Below, piece by piece: positions 7,107 to 64,000 of a stretch of DNA of 64,000 nt (its first letter is position 1; each line of letters begins with the position of its first letter). Location: NCBI GenBank assembly GCA_002104905.1, contig MCFE01000357.1, positions 23,900-87,899 of the forward strand, read 5' to 3'. The notes beneath the pieces were generated by a model. It did no database searches, was not told the origin of the DNA, and saw nothing but the letters and a program-made list of their open reading frames with translations. Made by a program: the position numbers and the translations under genes. The DNA comes from Basidiobolus meristosporus CBS 931.73 (lineage: Eukaryota > Fungi > Basidiobolomycota).

Positions 7107-10039
7107 CCCTATGAAAAATAATTTGGTCCCACAGGTGGATCCAATTTGGATCAGTTGTCAATATCCTGTCAGGAGACTGCTATAATACCAGCAGCTTCAA
7201 ATTAATGACCATTTACACAATCTTGTGATAAGATCACAACAGTATTTGCTAATTTTACAGCCAAATAAAGTTGATAAAATATGACATTGTTCATAAAGTG
7301 TATTGCCAAGGGTGGTACGGCATTGTTGTGGTCTTGGTGCACTTTACAATGATTTGAGTGAACCTAACTGGCCAGTACATCCAATTGCCTTATATGGCAA
7401 GGAACTTGACAGTGTTTGATGGCCTCTTTGCAAGCCTCTGATGGCATTATCATGGCAGTATGGTGGCCTACAGCTAGCAACATAAAATGCTACCATACCA
7501 TTTTACCAAGTGGTATTTCCTTTTTCTACCTCCCCTTGCACAACTCATATATTCCACTGTAGAATCATCCCTCTTGATTTGCTTACCCACTACATCCTTG
7601 GGTATTCCACATATATCTTAAATCAAAAAATACTATGGCCCCCAGCATACCAACCTCTACCAACACACACACCTGCTGCAATTGACACACTTCTATCACC
7701 TCAACTTTACGGCTTTTTGGTGTGATGCTTGCAAAGTAGCCATATATCTTACATTGCTGGTAACATATACATCTTGCAAACAGATGCTTGGCTGCTGCCA
7801 CTTCTGCCATGAATACCTCTTGAATATCAGCAAAGAACTTCTTGGTATTTAACCAATATATTCCTTCTCCCTGCTGGATTCTAGTCCCCTTTATAAGTGC
7901 ATTCTGGCTCTTTTTTGTGTGAATTTCATATTGAATGGTGTAGAAATTGGCTTGTGACCAAGTGAGATCCAGCATACCTTGGTAGAGTTTTCCTAATAAA
8001 AATTAGTTACTTGTTGCATCCAACCCAACCTTGCATTACTTAACTGATTACCCACACATTGGGGCTGCTTAGCTTCTTAATGACATAGGCATAGATGTCT
8101 CCATGTGCACATCTGTCCTCAGTATTTTCCAACTTTTCCTGGCTGTCCTCCATGCACCAATTCATCACATCCATGACAGATTTGAAGGTAATATTCTTGA
8201 TGAAAATGGGATATGGTAGTACCTGCGACTTGACTTGTCTTCCTATCTCCCCACACATCTGCTCCATAGGAAACTCCCAAAAGGTGAAGCAAGGTCCAAT
8301 ATTCTCAATACACCAAGTAAGATGGAATAGCAAATGGATACAGCAGTGGCAGAGATCTATGCATTCAGCTTTATGTTTATAGTATAGCCACTCAAATCCT
8401 GTCACAAACATTTTGCACAATAGCTGTAGATGTGTCAAGCTGGCATTGGTGATCTGCATCTTGATGATTATTCCTGCAAAGTCCACATATGACTCCCAAT
8501 GCTTCCAATGTACTCTTGGTAGCAATAGCTTCAGAAGGCCACTTGAATAAATACATATCCAGTTCATCCAGTCCTTGCACTAGTATTGTCACATGGGCAT
8601 ATGAATGTTGGTTGGAGCCTGTGAGAGGTAGCTATGGTAGCAGATACTTTGTAATATCTTGCCAATTATTTCAAATTTCTTTAGTATTTCAAAGAGCTAT
8701 TTAGCTTGAGATCCCCCACGTACAACTGGGTCATCAGTATAGGGATATTTTTGAAAAACTATTACATTGCTCCCGGTGGAAAGTTTTTGCTGCAACAGAT
8801 ACCCTCTATCCTAAACATCTCTGGTTTACAATTAATTCCATATTATTGCCAATGGCTTATAGCTTGCCAACTTTGCTGCAATTGCATTCTGCCATTTGTA
8901 TGTTCTCTCTGTGGAAAGATTATGCTCTTAGTGTTGGTGGTTGGGTAATAATAGTGTGTGTGAGTTATGAAGTAAGTCCCCTGGATCTCACACATTTGAC
9001 AGCAATGCATGCCATTGTGCCCAGAAAAGCTGGCTATCTTGCTGATGCCTGGTGTATATCCAATGCAGATAATAATATGAGCTTTTACATGATGGCCATT
9101 TACTGTTATCCTACTGGAAAGCATGCAAAATTCATCTAGCAATGGATACAGGTAGCTATCCAGGTTGGATTGTGATTTAGGCCCAGATACCAGTGAGACC
9201 ACCATAAGATTTTGGCACTGATACCGTAAGATAGGCAGCAAAATCAGGTTGATGAGATTCAGTTGCCAGCAGGATCTGCTGGTGGAGTACTTGTTTGATG
9301 AGTATCCATCAAGTGCCAAGGCAAAGGCAAGGTCATACATACCTTCAAAGTGGCCCTTGCTTCTTAGCTGTTTGTAGTGTTTGCCATCAAGCATATCTGA
9401 TACGTTTGTGTTTGATTGATACTGAGTGGGGTACTTTATAGATTCACAATATTTGTCAGACTGCATGAGCTTGTTTATATGTGGTATTACTGTAATATAT
9501 CTGGAGTGTGAGCAATGTTTTCCCCCAATGGTGGTGGATTCCCGCCAAGTTGGACACCTTGCAGTGGTGGCATTTCCAGATGTGAATGCCATGTAATTGT
9601 TAACACATGCTGGCATCAGGACAGTCTCTGGATCATATGTTGCCAGCCATATGGCAGTTTTCCACTTATACTATATACATGGTAAGTTGTGTTGTAAAGA
9701 ATTTGTATTTCCACCTAAATATTCACCTAACTTAGTCACTTAGATCATTACCTTCCTATCCTAGAGAACACTGACCAAATTCCTTGTTGAGATTTACTTG
9801 GAATATTTTCACCAAAATACCAGGTACTCAGAAAATGAAAATCCTCAAAGTTGTCCAAACAGCCCCAAACTTTGCACACATGCTCTTGGGACCTTCCTTA
9901 ATCTATTCTAAGTGTTTGTGAATCCAAGGCCATATAAAAGTATAAATACTACTCTTACATTCAATAAATCATTAAGTGAAAACCACATAATCTACTTGTC
10001 CTCCCAGTCACTTCCAATACCTCCAAGACTCTTACAACA

Positions 10040-54937: not shown

Positions 54938-56125
54938 ATGGTTGGGGAAAATGTACAATGTAGAAGATATATCGTGCCCGGAAGGGTGGCCGGGGTATTT
55001 ATATGGCGGCCACAGGTGGAGGTTGGATAGTGTTGGGTGCTTAGCCGATGACGTTAGTGATTGCGGGGTTGCGGAAACAGGTATCAACCCACTCATTGTT
55101 CCGAGGAGGGGAGAGGGGAGAGGAGAGTGGTGTTGGTTCGCGGACCAATGACACCCGAGGATCATGTAGCCCATTGTTTCAGGAACGTGCGAAATGCCTT
55201 CAACCTTCTCGATTGATGGCTCCTTTGGCCCGGATAAGGGGGAGGTCATTCGGTCGAGCTGAGGTCGGTGATTGGAGCAGACCGAGAGCGATTAATAATG
55301 TACCCACCCCTAATCTCGCTCAGGTGACTGGTAATCGAGAAACGCTTGGTTGTTCATAATTCGCGGCCATCATTTGCCATTTGGACAAAAGTGGATTCAG
55401 CCTTGCTTTGAGCTTGAAAGCATGTGCTTGTTGGCTGTTTTCTAGGCATTTTAGAGATATACTTTGCATATGGGCCATGAATCTAACCGTACTAGAGCCA
55501 AAGCATAAGTTATTGATCTCTGTGGTTACGTTGGATGAGACATGAAATATCCTTAATGACTTCAAATAGCATTCGTCCATTATTTATTACTTGGTGACTT
55601 GTGTTGGTTGACCTACAAGTATCTCTAATAGGTGAAGAAGATACCGGCCGCAATCTTGATCTTGTTTGATATGAGTAGCCTGGAACCAGCAATGTGGCTA
55701 TGAACTCTGACAACCGCTTTTACTCAATCAGCCTTTCCTAACCCACCAGCGTTGTTGTAGCGTAATTGTGAATACTAGAAGTAACTTGGTGAACTGAAAG
55801 CGTGCTTCATGCTAATTTTAAGAACAATCAATAACTATGATACTTTTGGTTAATTGTCTGACTTGTATTGGTAAAGGTTTATCAAAGCACCAAGGGTTAG
55901 GGGAAACGGTTGCCAACATGTGGAATCTTTATTTTAGGTAAATCACAGAAGCCTGTGCTACTTTTGCTGCTTTTTACAATAGCATGGATTTGTGTGGGGT
56001 TAGTATGTAGATAAGAAAGAGCAAGTGAAAGGTACCTAAGCCACTACTCAAAAGAAAAAGTGAAAGAGGGAGTGATAAGAATGTGGACCATCAATACTGA
56101 TTGGCATAATACTATTGCAGGATTC

Positions 56126-56561: not shown

Positions 56562-57946
56562 GTTGGAAGTGATTGGGAGAACAAGTAGATAATGTGGTTT
56601 TCACTTAATGATTTATTCAATGTAAAAGTAGTATTTATACCTTTACATGGTCTTGGCATGACAAGCACCCAGAATAAGTTAAGGAAGGTCCCAAGAACAT
56701 GTGTGCAAAGTTTGGGGCTGTTTGGACAACTTTGAGAATTTTCATGTTCTGAGTACCTTGTATTTTGGTGAAAATATTCTATGTATATCCCAACAAGGGA
56801 TTTGGTCAGTATTTCCAAGGCCTTGAAGATAATGATCTAAGTGACTAAGTTAGGTAAATATTTGGGTGGAATTACAAATTTTTAAAATACTCCCACTGAG
56901 CTAAATGCTCATACTGACTAGTCCTAATATTGACCTAAGATATTCAAATGTGTCTCTAGCTAATAGTTTGGTGAATATGTCTGCAATCATTCATTTGAAG
57001 GATAGTAAACTAAGCTAACTAAGTTATTCACTCTAGCTTCACATATGAAATGATGTCTAATATCTATGTGCTTAGTTCTAGCATGAGAGGTTGGATTTCT
57101 ACCTGATTGTATACATCCTTGATTATCTTGAAATAAAGTAATAAGCATTTCTTGACATAGGCCTAAATCTGTAAAAAGCTTTCTTCACCATATTGCTTCT
57201 TTTGTAGCTTCACAGGCTGCCATATACTCTGCCTCTGTGGTGGAAAGTTCTACAGTTGGTTGCTTTCTTGAATTCCATGAAATTGCTCCTTGACAGTAAA
57301 GAAAGGTGCATCCTGTGGTGGATCTTCTGTTGTCCAAGTTTTGTTCCCAATCAGCATCAAAGTATCCCACAAGATCCTGTCCTGAATCCTTATAAGTGTA
57401 TCTTAAGCAGATATCAGTAGTTCCTTTCAGATATCCAAAAGTCCGCTTAACTGCTGCAATATGACCAGATCCATAGTTCTGATTATGCTGGCTGACAGCT
57501 CCCACTAAATATGAGATATCTGGATATGTTCCAAGCATGATATACATCAGACTGCTGACCATAGATTGATAAGGAAAGTCAGGGCTTTCAGATGGCACTA
57601 AGCTCTCCTGATTTGGTTGAGTTTTCACCAAGTTAAGGTTTGTCTCCATTGGGGTAGCTGCTGGTTTACAGTCTTCCATGTTGTACTTCTTTAGAATATC
57701 TTGAATATACTTGGATTGGCATAGGGTGATAGGCTAGATACTTCTGTCTATGGAGAACTTTATCCCTAAGTGGTAACTGAGCTCCACTAGATCAGACATC
57801 TTGAACTCTTTAGATAGGCTGGATTTAGTCTTTTGAATGTTGCTAGGTTATTGACAGCTATAATAAGAGCATCCACATATAGAGCTAATAGAGCTGGATT
57901 TGCTCTATCTGGCTTATAGCATATACTATAATCAGCTTTACTCCTT
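56562..57946 (-). mobile_element. 3' half of a copia (RT end, RNase H, PPT, 3' LTR), reverse strand
   Basis: MEDCKPAATPMETN...GYFDADW...WNSRKQ; PPT at 56890-56900; LTR 56889-56562 lacking its last ~20 bp. Confidence 0.9.
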
Positions 57947-59906
57947 AGGGGGAGACAGTTACCAACAGGTAAAATCTATATTTCAGTTGAAACAAAGAAG
58001 CCAGCACTACAGTTGTAGCCTTGATGCAAGAGTTTGTAGATGAGGGGAGTTTTAGGTAAGTTTACAAGAAGTGAAGATAGTTCTTCAGTGCTCAAGACAC
58101 TGTTCAGTGGGAAGGGGGGTGGCAAGAGGGGTAAGAATGATTTGTGAACAACATTAATGAGGGGAATATGATAAGGATTGATATTCATCATGAAGGGAGT
58201 GTGCTGCTTCAGATATTGCTGCCAAAGATCTGTCAAGTACTTCAGGTAGGCCAGCTTGGGATTTTCTGACTGCAGAATATAGTGAGCAAACTTCTTGACT
58301 TCAGGATCTCCAAGTATAGTTCTCCAGCAGGAGCCAGGTGTAGTGTGGTGTGTTCTCTTCCAGGCCTTGATCAGTGGGTTGTTGCAGTGGTGAAGTCTGA
58401 GATACAATCTGGTTCTAAGGTAGAGTAGTCTGATCTTGTAGGGCATAAACCCAAAAGCACCAAGAATAGCATGTCTGTAGGGGCATTCAGGCAGATGAGG
58501 CACCAGGGATGTAATGGACCAGACTGCAAACTTGTCAAGTTTAGTGCAGTCTCTGGCAGTAAGAGAGAGAAGTGGTAAGCCAAATTCCAGGACAGGGAAG
58601 ACAAACTGCTTGAGTAGAAGGAGGCAGCTGGGAGCTGAAGTTGTAGGAGGAGTTACAGCCAGTAGATTGTGGAATGCTTGTCTTGCCAGGATAATTCTCT
58701 TCTACAGGTGTGCTCCAGAGTCTAGTCCAGTAGGGAGGAAAGGAAAGCCAAGATATGTAGCAGAAACTTGAGCCACTAGAGTGCAGTTGTCTAAGCTGAT
58801 AGGACAACCCAAAGGTACTGTCTTTGCAGTGGAAAGCTGGAGATTATTCTTTTGCAGATACTGTTGGATTGACTGGGAATCTTGTTGCACATTGGAGGAG
58901 GATATTCTGATGTCATCAGCAAAGAGAGTAACCAGGCAGTCCGCTGAGAGTCTTGGGAAGTCATTTAGGAAGATGGCAAACAGTATAGGACCAAGCACAG
59001 AGCCATGAACCACTCCATTAGGAACTGAGAACACAGCTGATAGCTCACTTGGGTGCAGAATTCTTGCTTGTGGATCCAGAAACAGAGACCTGACAAGGAG
59101 GGTGAGGGAGGTACTGGAGAAGCATTGCAACTTGGACCAAAGCAGATTTCTGTCAACTGAATCAAAGGCCTTAGTAATATCAAACAGAACGGAGGGATAC
59201 TTGCACTGGAGAGAGTGATCTTGGCTAAGTGTAACTGCATATTCCAAGGAGAGGCCAGGAACAAAGCCAAACTGTGCAGGGTGAAGCTTGAGGGAGTCAG
59301 AGTAGAGCTCCTGAGCAAGCAGAAGCTCAAACACCTTTCTGCAGGTGGGCAGCAGAGATATTGGCCTGTAGGAGCTAGGATCCAGGTGCTTTCCTTTACC
59401 CTGATACAGTGACAGAAACATTGGCAAAGGACCATTCCTCAGGAGTAGAAAGCTGGGCTGAGCATTGCTGAAACAGTGGAAGCAGAAGAGTAGACATGGC
59501 CTTGGTACTAGTCTTCAGAAGCTCATAGGAGATTGTGTCCACACCTGGAGCAGTAGAGTTGGGAAGCTTCTTGAGCACATTCTGGGCTCTCTCTTGATCA
59601 AGTGCAAGTGGGATTGGCAGAGTCTTGAAGTCAGGATGAAAGCCAGGAGTAGAGTACTGCTTTGTAGAGAAGAAGATGTTAGCCAGCTGTTCTGTTGAGG
59701 GTAACTTCCTGGAAGAGGGCCTCATTGCCCTGTAGAGTCTTGATACTGTTCTTGTTATAGAGTTGGAAGATTGCAGAGGCAAAGAACTCAGAATATGGTC
59801 CCAGAGCTGAGTATGCAGAGAGTGGTGAGTTGCCTTGGAGTGGTGTATGGCTGTCAGGAGGAGTTTCTCTGTTTTTGGGTTAGGGAAACTCAGGTAGCTT
59901 TGCTGC
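57945..59906 (-). mobile_element. Non-LTR retrotransposon copy 2, 5'-truncated, 3' end ...CTGTCTCCCCCTAA
   Basis: RT motifs YRPISLL, FDITKAFDSV, GSVLGPILF, LFADD; roughly 85-90% similar to copy 1 by eye; no poly(A). Confidence 0.92.
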
Positions 59907-60091
59907 TTATTGGTGATTGTTTGAGTCCATATGGAGATTTTATAAGCCTGCAGATCAAATGGGGGTAATATTGGTCAACAAACCCATCAGGCTGGTTGAT
60001 ATACATGTTCTCATCAAGTTCACCATTCAAAAATGTAGTTTTTATATCCATTTGATGAATAAAAAGCTGATATTTGGCTGCAATAGCCAAT
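59907..60091 (-). mobile_element. 185-bp copia RT fragment between the two LINE copies
   Basis: [37 protein letters not shown]...[12 protein letters not shown]; corresponds to ~12732-12916 of the intact copia. Confidence 0.9.
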
Positions 60092-60161
60092 TTAGGGTTA
60101 GGGGGGGAGACAGTCACCAACAGGTGAAATCTTTATTTCAGTTGAAACAAAGAAGCCAGCT

Positions 60162-62930
60162 CTACTGTTGTAGCTTTGATACAAGAGTGTGTAGCTGAGG
60201 GGAATTTGTAGGTAAGTTAATAAGGAGTGATGATAGTTCTTCAGTGCTCAAGACACTGTTCAGTGGGAAGGGGGGTAGCAAGAGAGATAAGAATGCCTTG
60301 TGAACAACATTAATGAGGGGAATGTGATAAGGATTGATATTCATCATAAAGGGAGTATGCTGCTGCAGATATTGCTGCCAAAGGTCTGTCAAGTACTTCA
60401 GGTAGGCCAGCTTGGGTTTTTCTGACTGCAGAATATAGTGAGCAAACTTCTTGACTTCAGGATCTCCAAGTATAGTTCTCCAGCAGGAGCCAGGTGTTGT
60501 GTGGTGTGTTCTCTTCCAGGCCTTGATCAGTGGGTTGTTGCAGTTGTGAAGACTGAGGTATAATCTGGTTCTAAGGTAGAGAAGTCTGATCTTATAGGGC
60601 ATAAACCCAAAAGCACCAAGAATAGCATGTCTGTAGGGGCATTCAGGCAGATGAGGCACCAGGGAGGTAATGCACCATACTGCAAACTTGTCAAGCTTAG
60701 TGCAGTCTCTAGAAGTAAGAGAGAGAAGTGGTAAGCCAAATTCCAGGACAGGAAAAAAAAAACTGCTTGAGTAGATGGAGGCAGCTGGGAGCTGAAGTTG
60801 CAGGAGGGGTAACAGCCAGTAGCTTGTGGAGTGCCTGTCTTGCCAGGATAATTCTCTTCTACAGGTGTGCTCCAGAGTCTAGTCCAGTAGGAAGGAAAGG
60901 AAAGCCAAGATATGTAGCAGAAACCTGAGCAGGTAGAGTGGAGCTCTCCAAGTTGATTGGAGAGCCCAAAGGTACAGTCTTTGCAATGGAAAGCTGGAGA
61001 TTATTCTTCTGCAGATACGGTGGATGGTCTGGGAGTCTTGCTGCATATTGGAGGAGGATATTCTGATGTCATCAGCAAAGAGAGTAACCAGGCAGTCAGC
61101 TGAGAGTCTTGGGAAATCATTCAGGAAGATGGCAAACAGTATAGGACCAAGCACAGAGCCTTGAACCACTCCATTAGGAACTGAGAACACAGCTGATTGC
61201 TCACTTGGGTGCAGAATTCTTGCTTGTGGATCCAGAAACAGAGACCTGACAAGGAGGGTGAGAGAGGTACTGGAGAAGCATTGCAACTTGGACCAAAGCA
61301 GATTTCTGTCAACTGAATCAAAGGCCTTAGTAATATCAAACAGAACGGAGGGATACTTGCACTGGAGAGAGTGATCTTGGCTAAGTATGACTGCATATTC
61401 CAAGGAGAGGCCAGGAACAAAGCCAAACTGTGCAGGATGAAACTTGAGGGAGTCAGAGTAGAGCTCCTGAGCAAGCAGAAGCTCAAACACCTTTCTGCAG
61501 GTGGGCAGCAGAGATATTGGCCTGTAGGAGCTAGGATCCAGGTGCTTTCCTTTATCCTTGTACAGTGGCAGAACATTTGCAAAGGACCATTCCTCAGGAG
61601 TAGAAAGCTGGGCTGAGCATTGCTGAAACAGTGGAAGCAGAAGTGCAGACATGGCCTTGGTACTAGTCTTCAGAAGCTCATAGGAGATTGTGTCCACACC
61701 TGGAGCAGTAGAGTTGGGAAGCCTCTTGAGCACATTATGGATTCTCTCTTGATCAAGTGCAAGTGGGATGGGCAGAGTCTTGAAGTCAGGATGAAAGCCA
61801 GGAGTAGAGTACTGCTTTGTAGAGAAGAAGATGTTAGCCAGCTGTTCTGTTGAAGGTAACTTCCTGGAAGAGGGCCTCATTGCCCTGTAGAGTCTTGATA
61901 CTGTTCTTGTCATAGAGTTGGAAGATTGCAGAGGCAAAGAACTCATAATATGATCCCAGAGCTGAGTATGCAGAGAGTGGTGAGTTGCCTTGGAGTGGTG
62001 TATTGCTGTCAGGAGGAGTTTCTCTGTTTTTGGGTTAGGGAAACTCAGGTAGCTTTGTTGCAGGGCTGAAACAATGGATTCCCATTTTCTTGAGGTAACA
62101 GCAGTAGTCTTGCATGACAGTGAGAGGGAGGCAGACACCAGAATCAGATGCTTCACAAAGAGCCAGGCATAGTTGAGATCATCTGGCAGAGAAAGTAGCA
62201 AACTGGCAAGCTTCAAGTAGTTCCCAAAGTCTTTCTTCTGATTCTTGGTAGCTTTGTGGGTGAGCACAGTAAGTTTTGGCAGCTTCTTCTTCACAACTGG
62301 TTGCATAGAAAGGGACCAGGCTGGGTGGTCAGAGGCTCTCAAGGATCCTAGCTCAGCTCCAGAGAATTGCTTGACTTCATTCACAAAGTAGAGGGCAGCA
62401 GCAGAAGGGCAGATCCAGTCAACACATCTTTTCTCAGATTGAGCACCTAGTGCTAGCAGGTGGCTTTCTCTCAGGCAGTTCAGTAGGAATGTAGACCTTG
62501 GCTTCATTCTTGCAGTCAGAGTAGTCTTGTTCTCAGGATGGGGAATGTTGAGATCTCCAAGCAATATAACAGATGTTGATATAGATTGTTGGTATTGCTG
62601 AACCTTCTGGCATATAACTTGCACTTCCTGAAGGGGGAGACTTGGAGGCAGATAGCAGAGCACCAGACTGATAGTTGGCAACTGGAGAGCAGCACAGTAA
62701 GGGGAGTAAAGAGGAACACAGAGCTGAGGAGTATTGATGGTAGAAGAGATGAAGCAGATAGAGGAGGTATTCTTTGTTCTAGGAGTAGAAAAGCAATATA
62801 GATTAGTCAAAAGTATAGAGGGTAGCTGGACATCAATCAAACACAGGAGGGAAAATCTTGAAAGAAGTCTCTCTAGAGTTGGTCTTGATGGCTGTATGCT
62901 GTTGCAGTTAGGCAACAGAACTTCAGGTAG
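60162..62930 (-). pseudogene. LINE ORF2: APE endonuclease + reverse transcriptase, no C-terminal CCHC or RNase H seen
   Basis: NCNSI, CYLPP, LLGDLN, VDW, SDH (APE); APGVD, YRPISLL, DITKAFD, VQGSVLGP, LFADD, YLG (RT); 1-nt deletion ~61020, TAG at 60859-60861, homopolymer shift ~60755. Confidence 0.9.
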
Positions 62931-63783
62931 TCAGGCAGAGGTTGTAGCTTCTTCAGAGGCAGCATTGACAATGTGACCTGCAGAGTCCCAGAGCTCTTCA
63001 AATGGTGCATCACTTAAGTCAGCAAGGAGGGAAATGGCATGGTTCTTGAGGAAGTATGCCACATCATAGGAGGGGGCTTGTCTCTTGATGGCAGCAAAGA
63101 AAGACAGAATGGCAACATGGGCTGGAGGCTTGTTGAACAGTAGAGAGTCAGAGGATTCAGATTCTTCAGGCACTATCTTGAAGTCAGTTTTCAGCCAGTT
63201 AAGGTTCTTCTCCACAAAGGCAACAAATGGGTCAGCAATGTTTTGGTCTAGGATAACCTCCAGAATCTTCCCTTTTCTCCAGGCCAGATTGACAATTCTT
63301 GAGAGCTGAATATTGCATGCCTTGAGTGCTTTCCTGATGTTGGAAATGGGAGTCCAGGGAACTTGCTTCAAGTACACCACAGTCCAGGTAGAAGCTGGTG
63401 GTAGGTTTGCTGGGGGCTTGTAAGTCCTTCTGTGTGGCAATGGAGCTGCAGTAGTCAGATTGGAGTCCACATTCTCAGTAGAGGGTTTGCTTGATGTGTC
63501 TTGCTGAATGGTACTGGAGCTGGATGTGCTGATTATTCTTGCTAGAACCTTGCCTGCATAAGTCTGAGGTATAGCTGAGGTGACTGTAGTGGTGGTGGCA
63601 GCTGGTGCAGGTGGAGAGGCAGAAACTGAAGCAGGAACTGAGGTCACCTGGGAGAAGGCAGTAGAAGCAGGTTTTCTGGGAGGAACAGAGTTCACTATCC
63701 AGTTGTTCTGTAAAACACTGGAGTAGCTTTTCTGTGGAACAGGATCTTGCTCTTGAACAGGAACAGAAACAGGAGGCTGGGGC
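62931..63783 (-). CDS. LINE ORF1 (Pro/Ser/Thr-rich N-terminus plus RRM-like core), 5'-truncated by the telomere
   Basis: WTVVYLKQVPWTPISNIRKALKACNIQLSRIVNLAWRKGKILEVIL; the frame is open from the telomeric repeats to TGA 62933-62931 with no ATG start. Confidence 0.75.
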
Positions 63784-64000
63784 TTAGGGTTAGGGTTAGG
63801 GTTAGGGTTAGGGTTAGGGTTAGGGTTAGGGTTAGGGTTAGGGTTAGGGTTAGGGTTAGGGTTAGGGTTAGGGTTAGGGTTAGGGTTAGGGTTAGGGTTA
63901 GGGTTAGGGTTAGGGTTAGGGTTAGGGTTAGGGTTAGGGTTAGGGTTAGGGTTAGGGTTAGGGTTAGGGTTAGGGTTAGGGTTAGGGTTAGGGTTAGGTT
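63784..64000 (+). repeat. Telomeric repeat (TTAGGG)~36, right-arm orientation
   Basis: Perfect TTAGGG array to the end of the window. Confidence 0.99.

Follow-up and report, generated by a model that had tools for sequence, protein, structure and literature searches.

Retrotransposons associated with telomeres are central to ideas linking telomerase and mobile elements, and three kinds of them are known: site-specific long interspersed nuclear elements (LINEs) with poly(A) (TRAS and SART, for example), elements taking the place of telomerase (e.g., HeT-A and TART), and endonuclease-less Penelope-like elements (PLEs) carrying reverse-complement telomere repeats. Here, we analyze a stretch of 64,000 nucleotides (nt) from the fungus Basidiobolus meristosporus CBS 931.73 (contig MCFE01000357.1, positions 23,900 to 87,899 of the forward strand; in the following, the window), the right end of which contains copies of a LINE family that mixes all three. 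It is a LINE with an apurinic/apyrimidinic-type endonuclease (APE), its 3' end bears a tail of telomere repeats, it forms one-way terminal stacks together with passenger elements, and telomerase-type arrays are present alongside. With moderate confidence, we favor a mixed model in which this family is specialized for chromosome ends and primes, by pairing of its tail, on free ends or on nicks set by the APE.

In TRAS and SART, pairing of telomeric sequence in the template RNA with the target aids the start of reverse transcription. The Basidiobolus family resembles these elements in the combination of APE and reverse transcriptase (RT), in the presence of telomerase-type telomeres and in its fixed orientation (for an overview of TRAS/SART: PMC5537684). 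However, TRAS and SART have poly(A), insert at a defined nucleotide and are flanked by long telomere tracts on both sides, whereas here poly(A) is missing, the tail is part of the element, the proximal tract comprises at most 20 nt, the flanks are often non-telomeric and a CCHC motif is lacking. With HeT-A, TART and TAHRE the family shares one-way head-to-tail terminal arrays with the 3' ends directed to the centromere, common 5' truncation and the coexistence of autonomous and non-autonomous partners. Drosophila, however, has no telomerase repeats and its junctions are poly(A), whereas here TTAGGG caps the stacks and the joints consist of telomere units.

The PLEs Athena and Coprina attach via short reverse-complement telomere repeats at their 3' end to G-rich overhangs, are confined to chromosome ends and contain hammerhead ribozymes beside the repeats (PMC8557442). 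Reverse-complement telomere repeats at the 3' end are thus common to both systems, but Athena and Coprina have a PLE-type RT, hammerheads and no endonuclease, whereas the elements described here are LINEs with APE and ORF1, in which Rfam detected neither a ribozyme, hammerhead included, nor any other known RNA (8.5 kb of the window and the loci L032, L037 and L017 were searched). The elements MoTeR, FoTeR and Cnl1 are of the CRE clade, encode a C-terminal restriction enzyme-like endonuclease (REL) and reside at telomeres in arrays split by short telomere tracts (PMC12857005). They are likewise fungal, telomeric and arranged in arrays with short telomere tracts in between; their C-terminal REL differs from the N-terminal APE found here, where no REL motif is present. 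A first-pass annotation of the window, made from its sequence, had already assigned MoTeR an endonuclease of the REL type, in agreement with this paper.

Endonuclease-independent L1 insertion at dysfunctional telomeres or breaks, in which a free 3' end primes and no target-site duplication is formed, is mentioned among the work cited in PMC5537684. It represents an occasional side reaction of a poly(A) element, whereas a telomere-matched tail and a terminal location are the rule here. Stringent-type LINE/SINE (short interspersed nuclear element) pairs, of which eel UnaL2/UnaSINE1 is an example, have a 3' hairpin module and a short tandem-repeat tail common to the LINE and its passengers as in Basidiobolus, but their repeat bears no relation to the telomere and their copies are scattered. 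Other non-LTR (long terminal repeat) elements associated with telomeres comprise, next to TRAS/SART and the Drosophila trio, Tx1-1_ACar, Zepp and GilM/GilT (PMC10088271; PMC5537684). A literature search found no published telomeric elements or LINEs of Basidiobolus and no published APE LINE with a telomere-repeat tail; the search reached few subscription journals and no Repbase, so a prior description is possible.

The plus strand of the window closes with about 36 TTAGGG units, read directly from the sequence between 63784/5 and 64000, and the right window edge therefore is a chromosome end. From the telomere inward, the window contains the following features (ORF, open reading frame; aa, amino acids; EEP, endonuclease/exonuclease/phosphatase):

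63785 to 64000, plus strand: terminal telomere array, about 36 TTAGGG units, read directly; the T at 63784 is common to the array and LINE copy 1
60101 to 63784, minus strand: LINE copy 1, a defective copy, 5'-truncated within ORF1, that shares about 97-98% identity with most genomic copies
62931 to 63695, minus strand: ORF1 remnant of copy 1, 254 aa, N-terminus missing by comparison with intact relatives
60879 to 62915, minus strand: ORF2 frame of copy 1, 678 aa, with Pfam RVT_1 (E 2e-23) and a weak Exo_endo_phos_2 match
62271 to 62915, minus strand: divergent APE (EEP-fold) endonuclease domain of ORF2, assigned by alignments, weak-to-borderline Pfam matches, hhalign and AlphaFold/Foldseek
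60996 to 61547, minus strand: RT core of ORF2, Pfam RVT_1 E 2.3e-23, human L1 ORF2p RT E 3e-13
60092 to 60155, minus strand: 3' module of copy 1, consisting of stem-loop 1, stem-loop 2 (CACC/GGTG), spacer, C7 and the tail TAACCCTAA (plus strand 60092-60100)
59913 to 60091, minus strand: copia fragment B, 179 bp, reference copia 12910-12732, stopping at the tail of copy 1
59907 to 59912, strand unassigned: six nt at the 5' junction of copy 2, either filler or copia that has diverged, by sequence comparison
57948 to 59906, minus strand: LINE copy 2, 5'-truncated between the APE and RT regions (corresponding to position 62061 of copy 1), sitting inside the copia
57945 to 57947, minus strand: 3-nt tail TAA of copy 2; the plus-strand TT at 57945-57946 is also copia sequence
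56563 to 57946, minus strand: copia fragment A, corresponding to reference copia 14347-12963 and belonging, in the same orientation, to the element that also contains fragment B
55894 to 56122, minus strand: remains of an older element's 3' end, degenerate and with a tail of the telomere type; they match the 3' end of copy 1 at 72% and are cut off at 56123 by a copia LTR

Both LINE copies lie on the minus strand with their 5' ends facing the telomere, and reading of their 3' ends shows no poly(A). For copy 1 the plus strand displays TTAGGGTTA at 60092-60100 and G7 at 60101-60107, i.e., the sense strand ends with CTGTCT, C7 and the tail TAACCCTAA; for copy 2 the plus strand displays TTA at 57945-57947 followed by G5, the sense end being CTGTCT, C5 and TAA. 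The degenerate third 3' end, the tail of which reads GGGTTA and G4 on the plus strand, forms the base of the stack. Across these three elements the identity to the family majority sequence rises from inside to outside (about 72%, about 93% and about 98%). The two LINE copies are 96% identical across an alignment of about 1.96 kb, and copy 2, being about 92-94% identical to other genomic copies, is the older one. Relative to other copies, copy 1 shows one-base length differences at about 61018 and 60753 (unitig comparison), and its ORF2 departs from the family alignment past about residue 672. A 1176-nt contig of another copy matches copy 1 through 63784 and extends 828 nt further; therefore, the telomere begins at a truncation point inside ORF1, with one T shared. 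The last host gene pieces stop near 55.6 kb of the window, close to the stack base.

The tail proved to be a trait of the whole family. A probe of 200 nt from the LINE 3' end yielded 337 candidates in the 89.5-Mb genome, and in the 30 loci examined all of about 35 family 3' ends consist of C4-10, TAA and zero to three further CCCTAA units, followed by unrelated and diverse DNA; none of these 3' ends has poly(A). A wider table of 61 junctions includes any element with the same hairpin module, i.e., six or more families in the loci L002-L037 and the window. In this table the tail, counted from its first T, ranges from 2 to 20 nt, lengths of 9 nt (n=15) and 3 nt (n=9) being the most frequent, and the commonest tail is TAACCCTAA, which corresponds to about 1.5 C-strand telomere units. 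In phase ...TAA end 24 of 58 tails, the base following these being A (n=12) or G (n=11) and never T, which may reflect either a preference at the nick site or a few templated A's.

In all families the order of the 3' module is the same: stem-loop 1, a linker of 2-3 nt, stem-loop 2, a pyrimidine spacer, the C-run and the tail. Stem 1 has 6-12 bp formed between TCTTTRTT... and ...AAYAAAGA and encloses a loop of 4-34 nt, and stem-loop 2 has the stem CACC/GGTG with a loop that varies between families. RNAalifold recovered both stems; the pairs are mostly invariant, one inner pair occurring as GC, AU, CG and UA types, and the tail is predicted to be unpaired. An AATAAA resembling a polyadenylation signal is part of stem 1 and is located 34-40 nt upstream of the end of the tail.

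These tails bear on the question of whether the family acts like TRAS and SART, i.e., whether its APE cuts duplex telomere repeats (e.g., TT^AGGG) and ordinary target-primed reverse transcription (TPRT) takes place inside the arrays, the short proximal tracts being survivors or shrunken interstitial tracts and the element being a parasite without a role in healing. The conserved APE motifs, a predicted fold matching the endonucleases (EN) of L1 and TRAS1, the long TTAGGG arrays flanking elements distally, the bias of the junction phase to TTA and copy 2, which demonstrates that integration into duplex DNA is possible, all agree with such a mode of action. However, all 61 proximal tracts are at most 20 nt long compared to more than 200 nt in the terminal arrays, whereas random insertion into arrays should leave many long tracts. 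Furthermore, tails of the same 3-9 nt adjoin copia, unique DNA and truncated LINEs alike; this narrow length distribution in such different surroundings shows that the repeat is carried by, and moves with, the element. Elements of the R1 clade carry CCHC motifs in ORF1 and in the C-terminus of ORF2, whereas a motif search found no CCHC pattern in either of these places here, and poly(A) is missing as well. We therefore regard a TRAS/SART-like mode as rather unlikely. The idea that the tails are remnants of earlier telomere tracts was rejected on the same grounds, namely their narrow lengths and their presence beside copia and unique DNA.

The copia sequences around copy 2 allow reconstruction of its insertion site. 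Fragments A and B have the same orientation and are contiguous in the reference copia apart from about 50 bp that are absent between them; therefore, what appeared as two broken copias is one copia split by copy 2. Copy 2 is an intrachromosomal insertion within this copia and was not added to a broken end. Template switching to copia RNA and break-induced replication were both considered as sources of fragment B and rejected, since B resumes about 50 bp after A in the same orientation. In the intact copia no TTAGGG is found at either breakpoint position, but at the 3' junction of copy 2 the copia itself supplies TT, resulting in a 2-nt microhomology with the tail. At this insertion, the only one with a known empty site, no target-site duplication was seen and about 50 bp of the target were lost. 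Copy 1 lies between the copia breakpoint and the telomere and is the outermost member of the stack.

Thus, the first-pass annotation was correct in its coordinates and strings for two APE- and RT-encoding LINE copies on the minus strand that point with their 5' ends to the telomere and lack poly(A), and in noting the absence of TTAGGG from the intact copia. Its description of two diverged copies, each joined to a copia broken at a different point, holds for the junctions and fails for the two separate copias. Accordingly, its proposal of telomere capping or break healing does not apply to copy 2, an internal insertion with loss of about 50 bp of target; copy 1 does occupy the outermost position, but it is likewise 5'-truncated, precisely at the point where the telomere begins.

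As the element is highly repeated and situated at a contig end, and as the supporting contigs derive from the same sample, an assembly artefact or a local segmental duplication might have generated both copies and their junctions. Exact unitigs, however, cover 59877-60008, with the 5' junction of copy 2, and 60037-60118, with the tail junction of copy 1; the sample from which they stem is probably the assembly's own. The latter unitig reaches 27 nt past the 60091/60092 join, which is below the 31-nt bridging rule. Among the unitig pieces listed, the 3' junction of copy 2 and the LINE-telomere junction are without cover. Moreover, the two copies differ by 4% in sequence as well as in their tails and flanks, and the same architecture is present on contigs of unrelated samples, making an artefact extremely unlikely.

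LTR elements are repeatedly inserted in terminal LINE stacks, namely copia and a second family starting with TGTTGTATCCAAGAG (L008, L009, L025, L026, L029; position 56123 of the window), and copia fragments often represent the basal flank of LINE stacks. In the left part of the window an ORF of the Transposase_21 (tnp2) type at 8843-9616 on the minus strand marks a DNA transposon fragment adjoining copia copies.

The protein-coding capacity of the family was assessed with the help of five relatives, 47-84% identical, which are found on metagenome or Logan contigs of other samples. In these relatives both ORF1 (437-500 aa) and ORF2 (821-923 aa) are intact, the 3' module and tail are as in the window, and elements are joined head to tail. 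ORF1 is located upstream of ORF2, LTRs are absent and the 5' truncation points are many and differ from each other (intact ORF1 in L031-L037). ORF1 carries a zinc ribbon at its N-terminus, followed by a coiled coil and a C-terminal domain, and its nearest Atlas clusters are from Zoopagomycota and Mucoromycota. The RT of ORF2 is recognized by Pfam RVT_1 (E 2e-23 to 4e-27) and matches the human L1 ORF2p RT (E 3e-13), and all nearest Atlas clusters of ORF2 pair RVT_1 with Exo_endo_phos. In the proteins P0001-P0005 Pfam reports only APE and RVT_1 and no RNase H, and a REL (PD-(D/E)XK) endonuclease with CCHC and RHD/N motif was not found in them. The nearest proteins beyond this group are at most 35% identical and are ORF2s of about 900 aa of the Exo_endo_phos_2 type, many from arthropods and rotifers. 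The element is an APE-type non-LTR retrotransposon (LINE) with an RT; the Atlas and homologue searches establish this kinship at the level of LINEs with APE and RT, above any named clade.

Over approximately its first 215 residues, ORF2 can be aligned with the APE domains of distantly related LINEs and keeps the motifs N-x-N, IDV (with Glu replaced by Asp), YxPP, GDxN, H, T, D(W) and SDH. Asp takes the place of the metal-binding Glu in each of the three members that cover this position, and a loop of about 11 residues ahead of the D motif is missing. By Pfam the domain is borderline (P0005 reaches 27.5 bits on Exo_endo_phos_2 at a cut-off of 27.4), the profile-profile comparison by hhalign recognizes it with a probability of 91.8%, and an AlphaFold model from a mixed alignment (predicted local distance difference test, pLDDT, 85) was matched by Foldseek to ExoIII, APE1, L1 EN and TRAS1 EN with a probability of 1.0. 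A single-sequence AlphaFold prediction of the N-terminal domain was unusable (pLDDT 38). These models and alignments support a real APE; since a profile of the family only finds no match in the Protein Data Bank (PDB), the domain is divergent. The catalytic set is conserved between families sharing only 46-66% identity, which argues, as far as sequence comparison can tell, for a nuclease in use.

This conservation argues against a purely endonuclease-free mechanism like that of Athena and Coprina; the first-pass annotation had stressed priming by chromosome 3' ends, as in these elements. In a mechanism of pure end healing, free 3' ends at eroded telomeres or breaks would be the sole primers, as for Athena/Coprina or EN-deficient L1, and the APE would be vestigial. 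This would account for the single orientation and terminal position of the copies and for truncated 5' ends being joined directly to the next tail, and EN-minus PLEs use reverse-complement telomere repeats likewise (PMC8557442). However, the catalytic residues of the APE are kept in every family compared, copy 2 is situated within one continuous copia and interstitial stacks exist, so that we consider pure end healing improbable. The conserved APE together with copy 2 shows that integration into duplex DNA occurs.

Base composition sets the LINEs apart from the host sequence: the CpG observed/expected ratio (o/e) is 0.01-0.02 in copies 1 and 2 (60104-63784 and 57951-59912), 0.80-0.85 in host ORFs and 0.09 in the copia. 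Among the relatives with intact ORFs, L031-L033 contain 0-4 CpG in about 5 kb and L037 contains 18 (o/e 0.08). Because genomic copies are 97-98% alike, CpG depletion is a property of the lineage and not the result of decay of each copy. A GC skew of about +0.25 on the plus strand across 57951-63784 makes the LINE sense strand C-rich and the cDNA strand G-rich, the polarity being that of the telomere; a canonical four-run G-quadruplex motif was not found in the LINEs.

On the genome level, a 21-nt motif of the 3' end occurs 713 times, 661 times in reverse and 52 times in forward orientation, and for a telomere 36-mer the counts are 6728 forward and 68 reverse. These matching biases show that, almost without exception, the sense strand of the LINE coincides with the telomeric C strand. 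On C1, C2, C22 and the contig of the window, for which both features are listed, LINE 3' ends are located 0.4-18 kb from a telomere array, and copies lie within about 20 kb of a contig end in every contig judged except two. For this, contig ends were deduced from the contig numbers, which follow the alphabetical order of size-ranked scaffold names, a rule that reproduces four known lengths. On contigs larger than 30 kb minus-sense matches track the deduced right ends, and 9 of 11 plus-sense matches fall within 5 kb of the left end, the two others lying on C613 and C781. Copies that are overwhelmingly terminal, uniformly oriented and free of poly(A), with C-run and TAA(CCCTAA)n throughout the loci examined, are what the first-pass annotation had anticipated, as opposed to random or poly(A)-tailed copies.

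The forward excess of the 36-mer means that nearly all telomere-bearing contigs are capped at their right end. Of the 1366 contigs, a few hundred appear to have such an end, which points to unmerged haplotypes, to a convention of the assembler or to chromosome ends in unusual number.

Truncated 5' ends of the LINEs are followed by the short tail of another copy or family, by a long telomere array or by the start of an LTR element inserted in the LINE. A long array directly follows the truncated LINE in L019 and in L004, in which only 420 nt of the LINE are left. In the unitigs many joints lead from an internal LINE position to a tail with 1-21 telomeric letters between. LINE-telomere junctions read ...CTT/AGGG, ...CCT/AGGG and ...GGGGCT/TAGGG, and the overlap with TT, TTA or TTAGGG at junctions amounts to 1-5 nt.

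Stacked with the LINEs is a non-coding passenger of about 525 nt (L017:964-1490, minus strand; also in L013, L021, L022 and L028), which is usually full length, has the 3' module and tail of the LINE and carries a B-box-like GGTTCAAATCC close to its 5' end. Its head was not recognized as a tRNA by ARAGORN or Rfam; the passenger is likely the SINE partner of the LINE. In L023 and L024 another element is joined via GTTAGGGTG..., lacks the two-hairpin module and has a 3' end beginning ...GGTGTAGGTG on the G-rich strand, possibly representing one more family, unrelated to the others, whose tail is of the telomere type.

Many LINEs, e.g., L2-type elements, have short repeat tails and 3' hairpins. 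Hence the family might also be an ordinary dispersed LINE with a microsatellite-like tail, the enrichment of which at ends results from tolerance of subtelomeres and from subtelomere duplication. Identical LINE-passenger junctions do recur in L005, L017, L025 and L028, suggesting some spread by duplication. However, a strand bias of 661:52 that matches the bias of the telomere is unexpected from passive retention, the tail is exactly the C-strand unit and in phase, and junction sites and truncation points differ widely; an ordinary LINE is therefore a very unlikely explanation.

According to the mixed model that we favor, the LINE RNA would end with ...C(n)UAACCCUAA, with or without a few A. 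Its C-rich tail, as a single strand, would pair over 2-9 nt with a DNA 3' end ...TT, ...TTA or ...TTAGGG that points to the chromosome end, and ORF2p would extend the paired end by TPRT, usually halting early. Telomerase would then add TTAGGG to the new truncated end. The ends used as primers would possess few or no telomere units; they might be termini that have eroded or broken, or else nicks that the APE of the element itself introduces at the telomere base or within subtelomeric sequence. In the order of events that we infer, repeated rounds would build the one-way head-to-tail stacks, including the non-coding passengers with the same 3' module. Reverse transcription from 3' ends of the G strand would account for the way the copies are oriented, for their short joints and microhomologies and for their truncation at the 5' end, and the uniformly short proximal tracts favor ends or nicks with almost no telomere left. 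The idea that the tail pairs with TT/TTAGGG 3' ends alongside telomerase, already voiced in the first-pass annotation, fits the junction overlaps of 1-5 nt and the long, perfect TTAGGG arrays, the latter indicating that telomerase-type capping coexists with the elements. Between healing of free ends and nicking by the APE at the telomere base, the sequence alone fits both.

Several points weigh against the mixed model. The CCCUAA end of the RNA is deduced from genomic DNA, and the AATAAA in stem 1 could act as a signal for polyadenylation; initiation would then need to bypass a poly(A) tail. The APE model depends on an alignment in which distant homologues predominate, and the profile restricted to the family has no PDB match at E up to 10. 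The absence of a target-site duplication at copy 2 fits an APE nick with target deletion as well as break repair. Moreover, the short proximal tracts could be due to survivorship, i.e., loss of insertions distal to long tracts, instead of priming on bare ends. The genome census is partial and uses mostly deduced contig ends, and L029 (C613, about 97.8 kb) and L025 (C781, about 59 kb) are stacks with an internal position or the opposite orientation. These two stacks could be remnants of former chromosome ends that have become interstitial, or could result from fusions or misjoins.

With more than 700 3' ends in 89 Mb, the family offers a natural system to study whether pairing of a tail with an overhang is by itself enough for end specificity, to which the window contributes the reconstructable empty site of an internal insertion and a telomere junction at a truncation point. 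The system also bears on the purpose of the endonuclease and on whether such elements help to heal chromosome ends. As a tentative possibility, which we hold with some doubt, the LINE and its passengers may constitute a second system of end maintenance beside telomerase, in which, after loss or complete erosion of a telomere, RNA with an end resembling the telomerase template is copied onto a bare 3' end that telomerase caps again. If this is true, an APE LINE would have converged on the trick of the endonuclease-less Penelope-like elements, and this early-diverging fungus would represent an intermediate between telomeres maintained by telomerase only and the retrotransposon-only telomeres of Drosophila.

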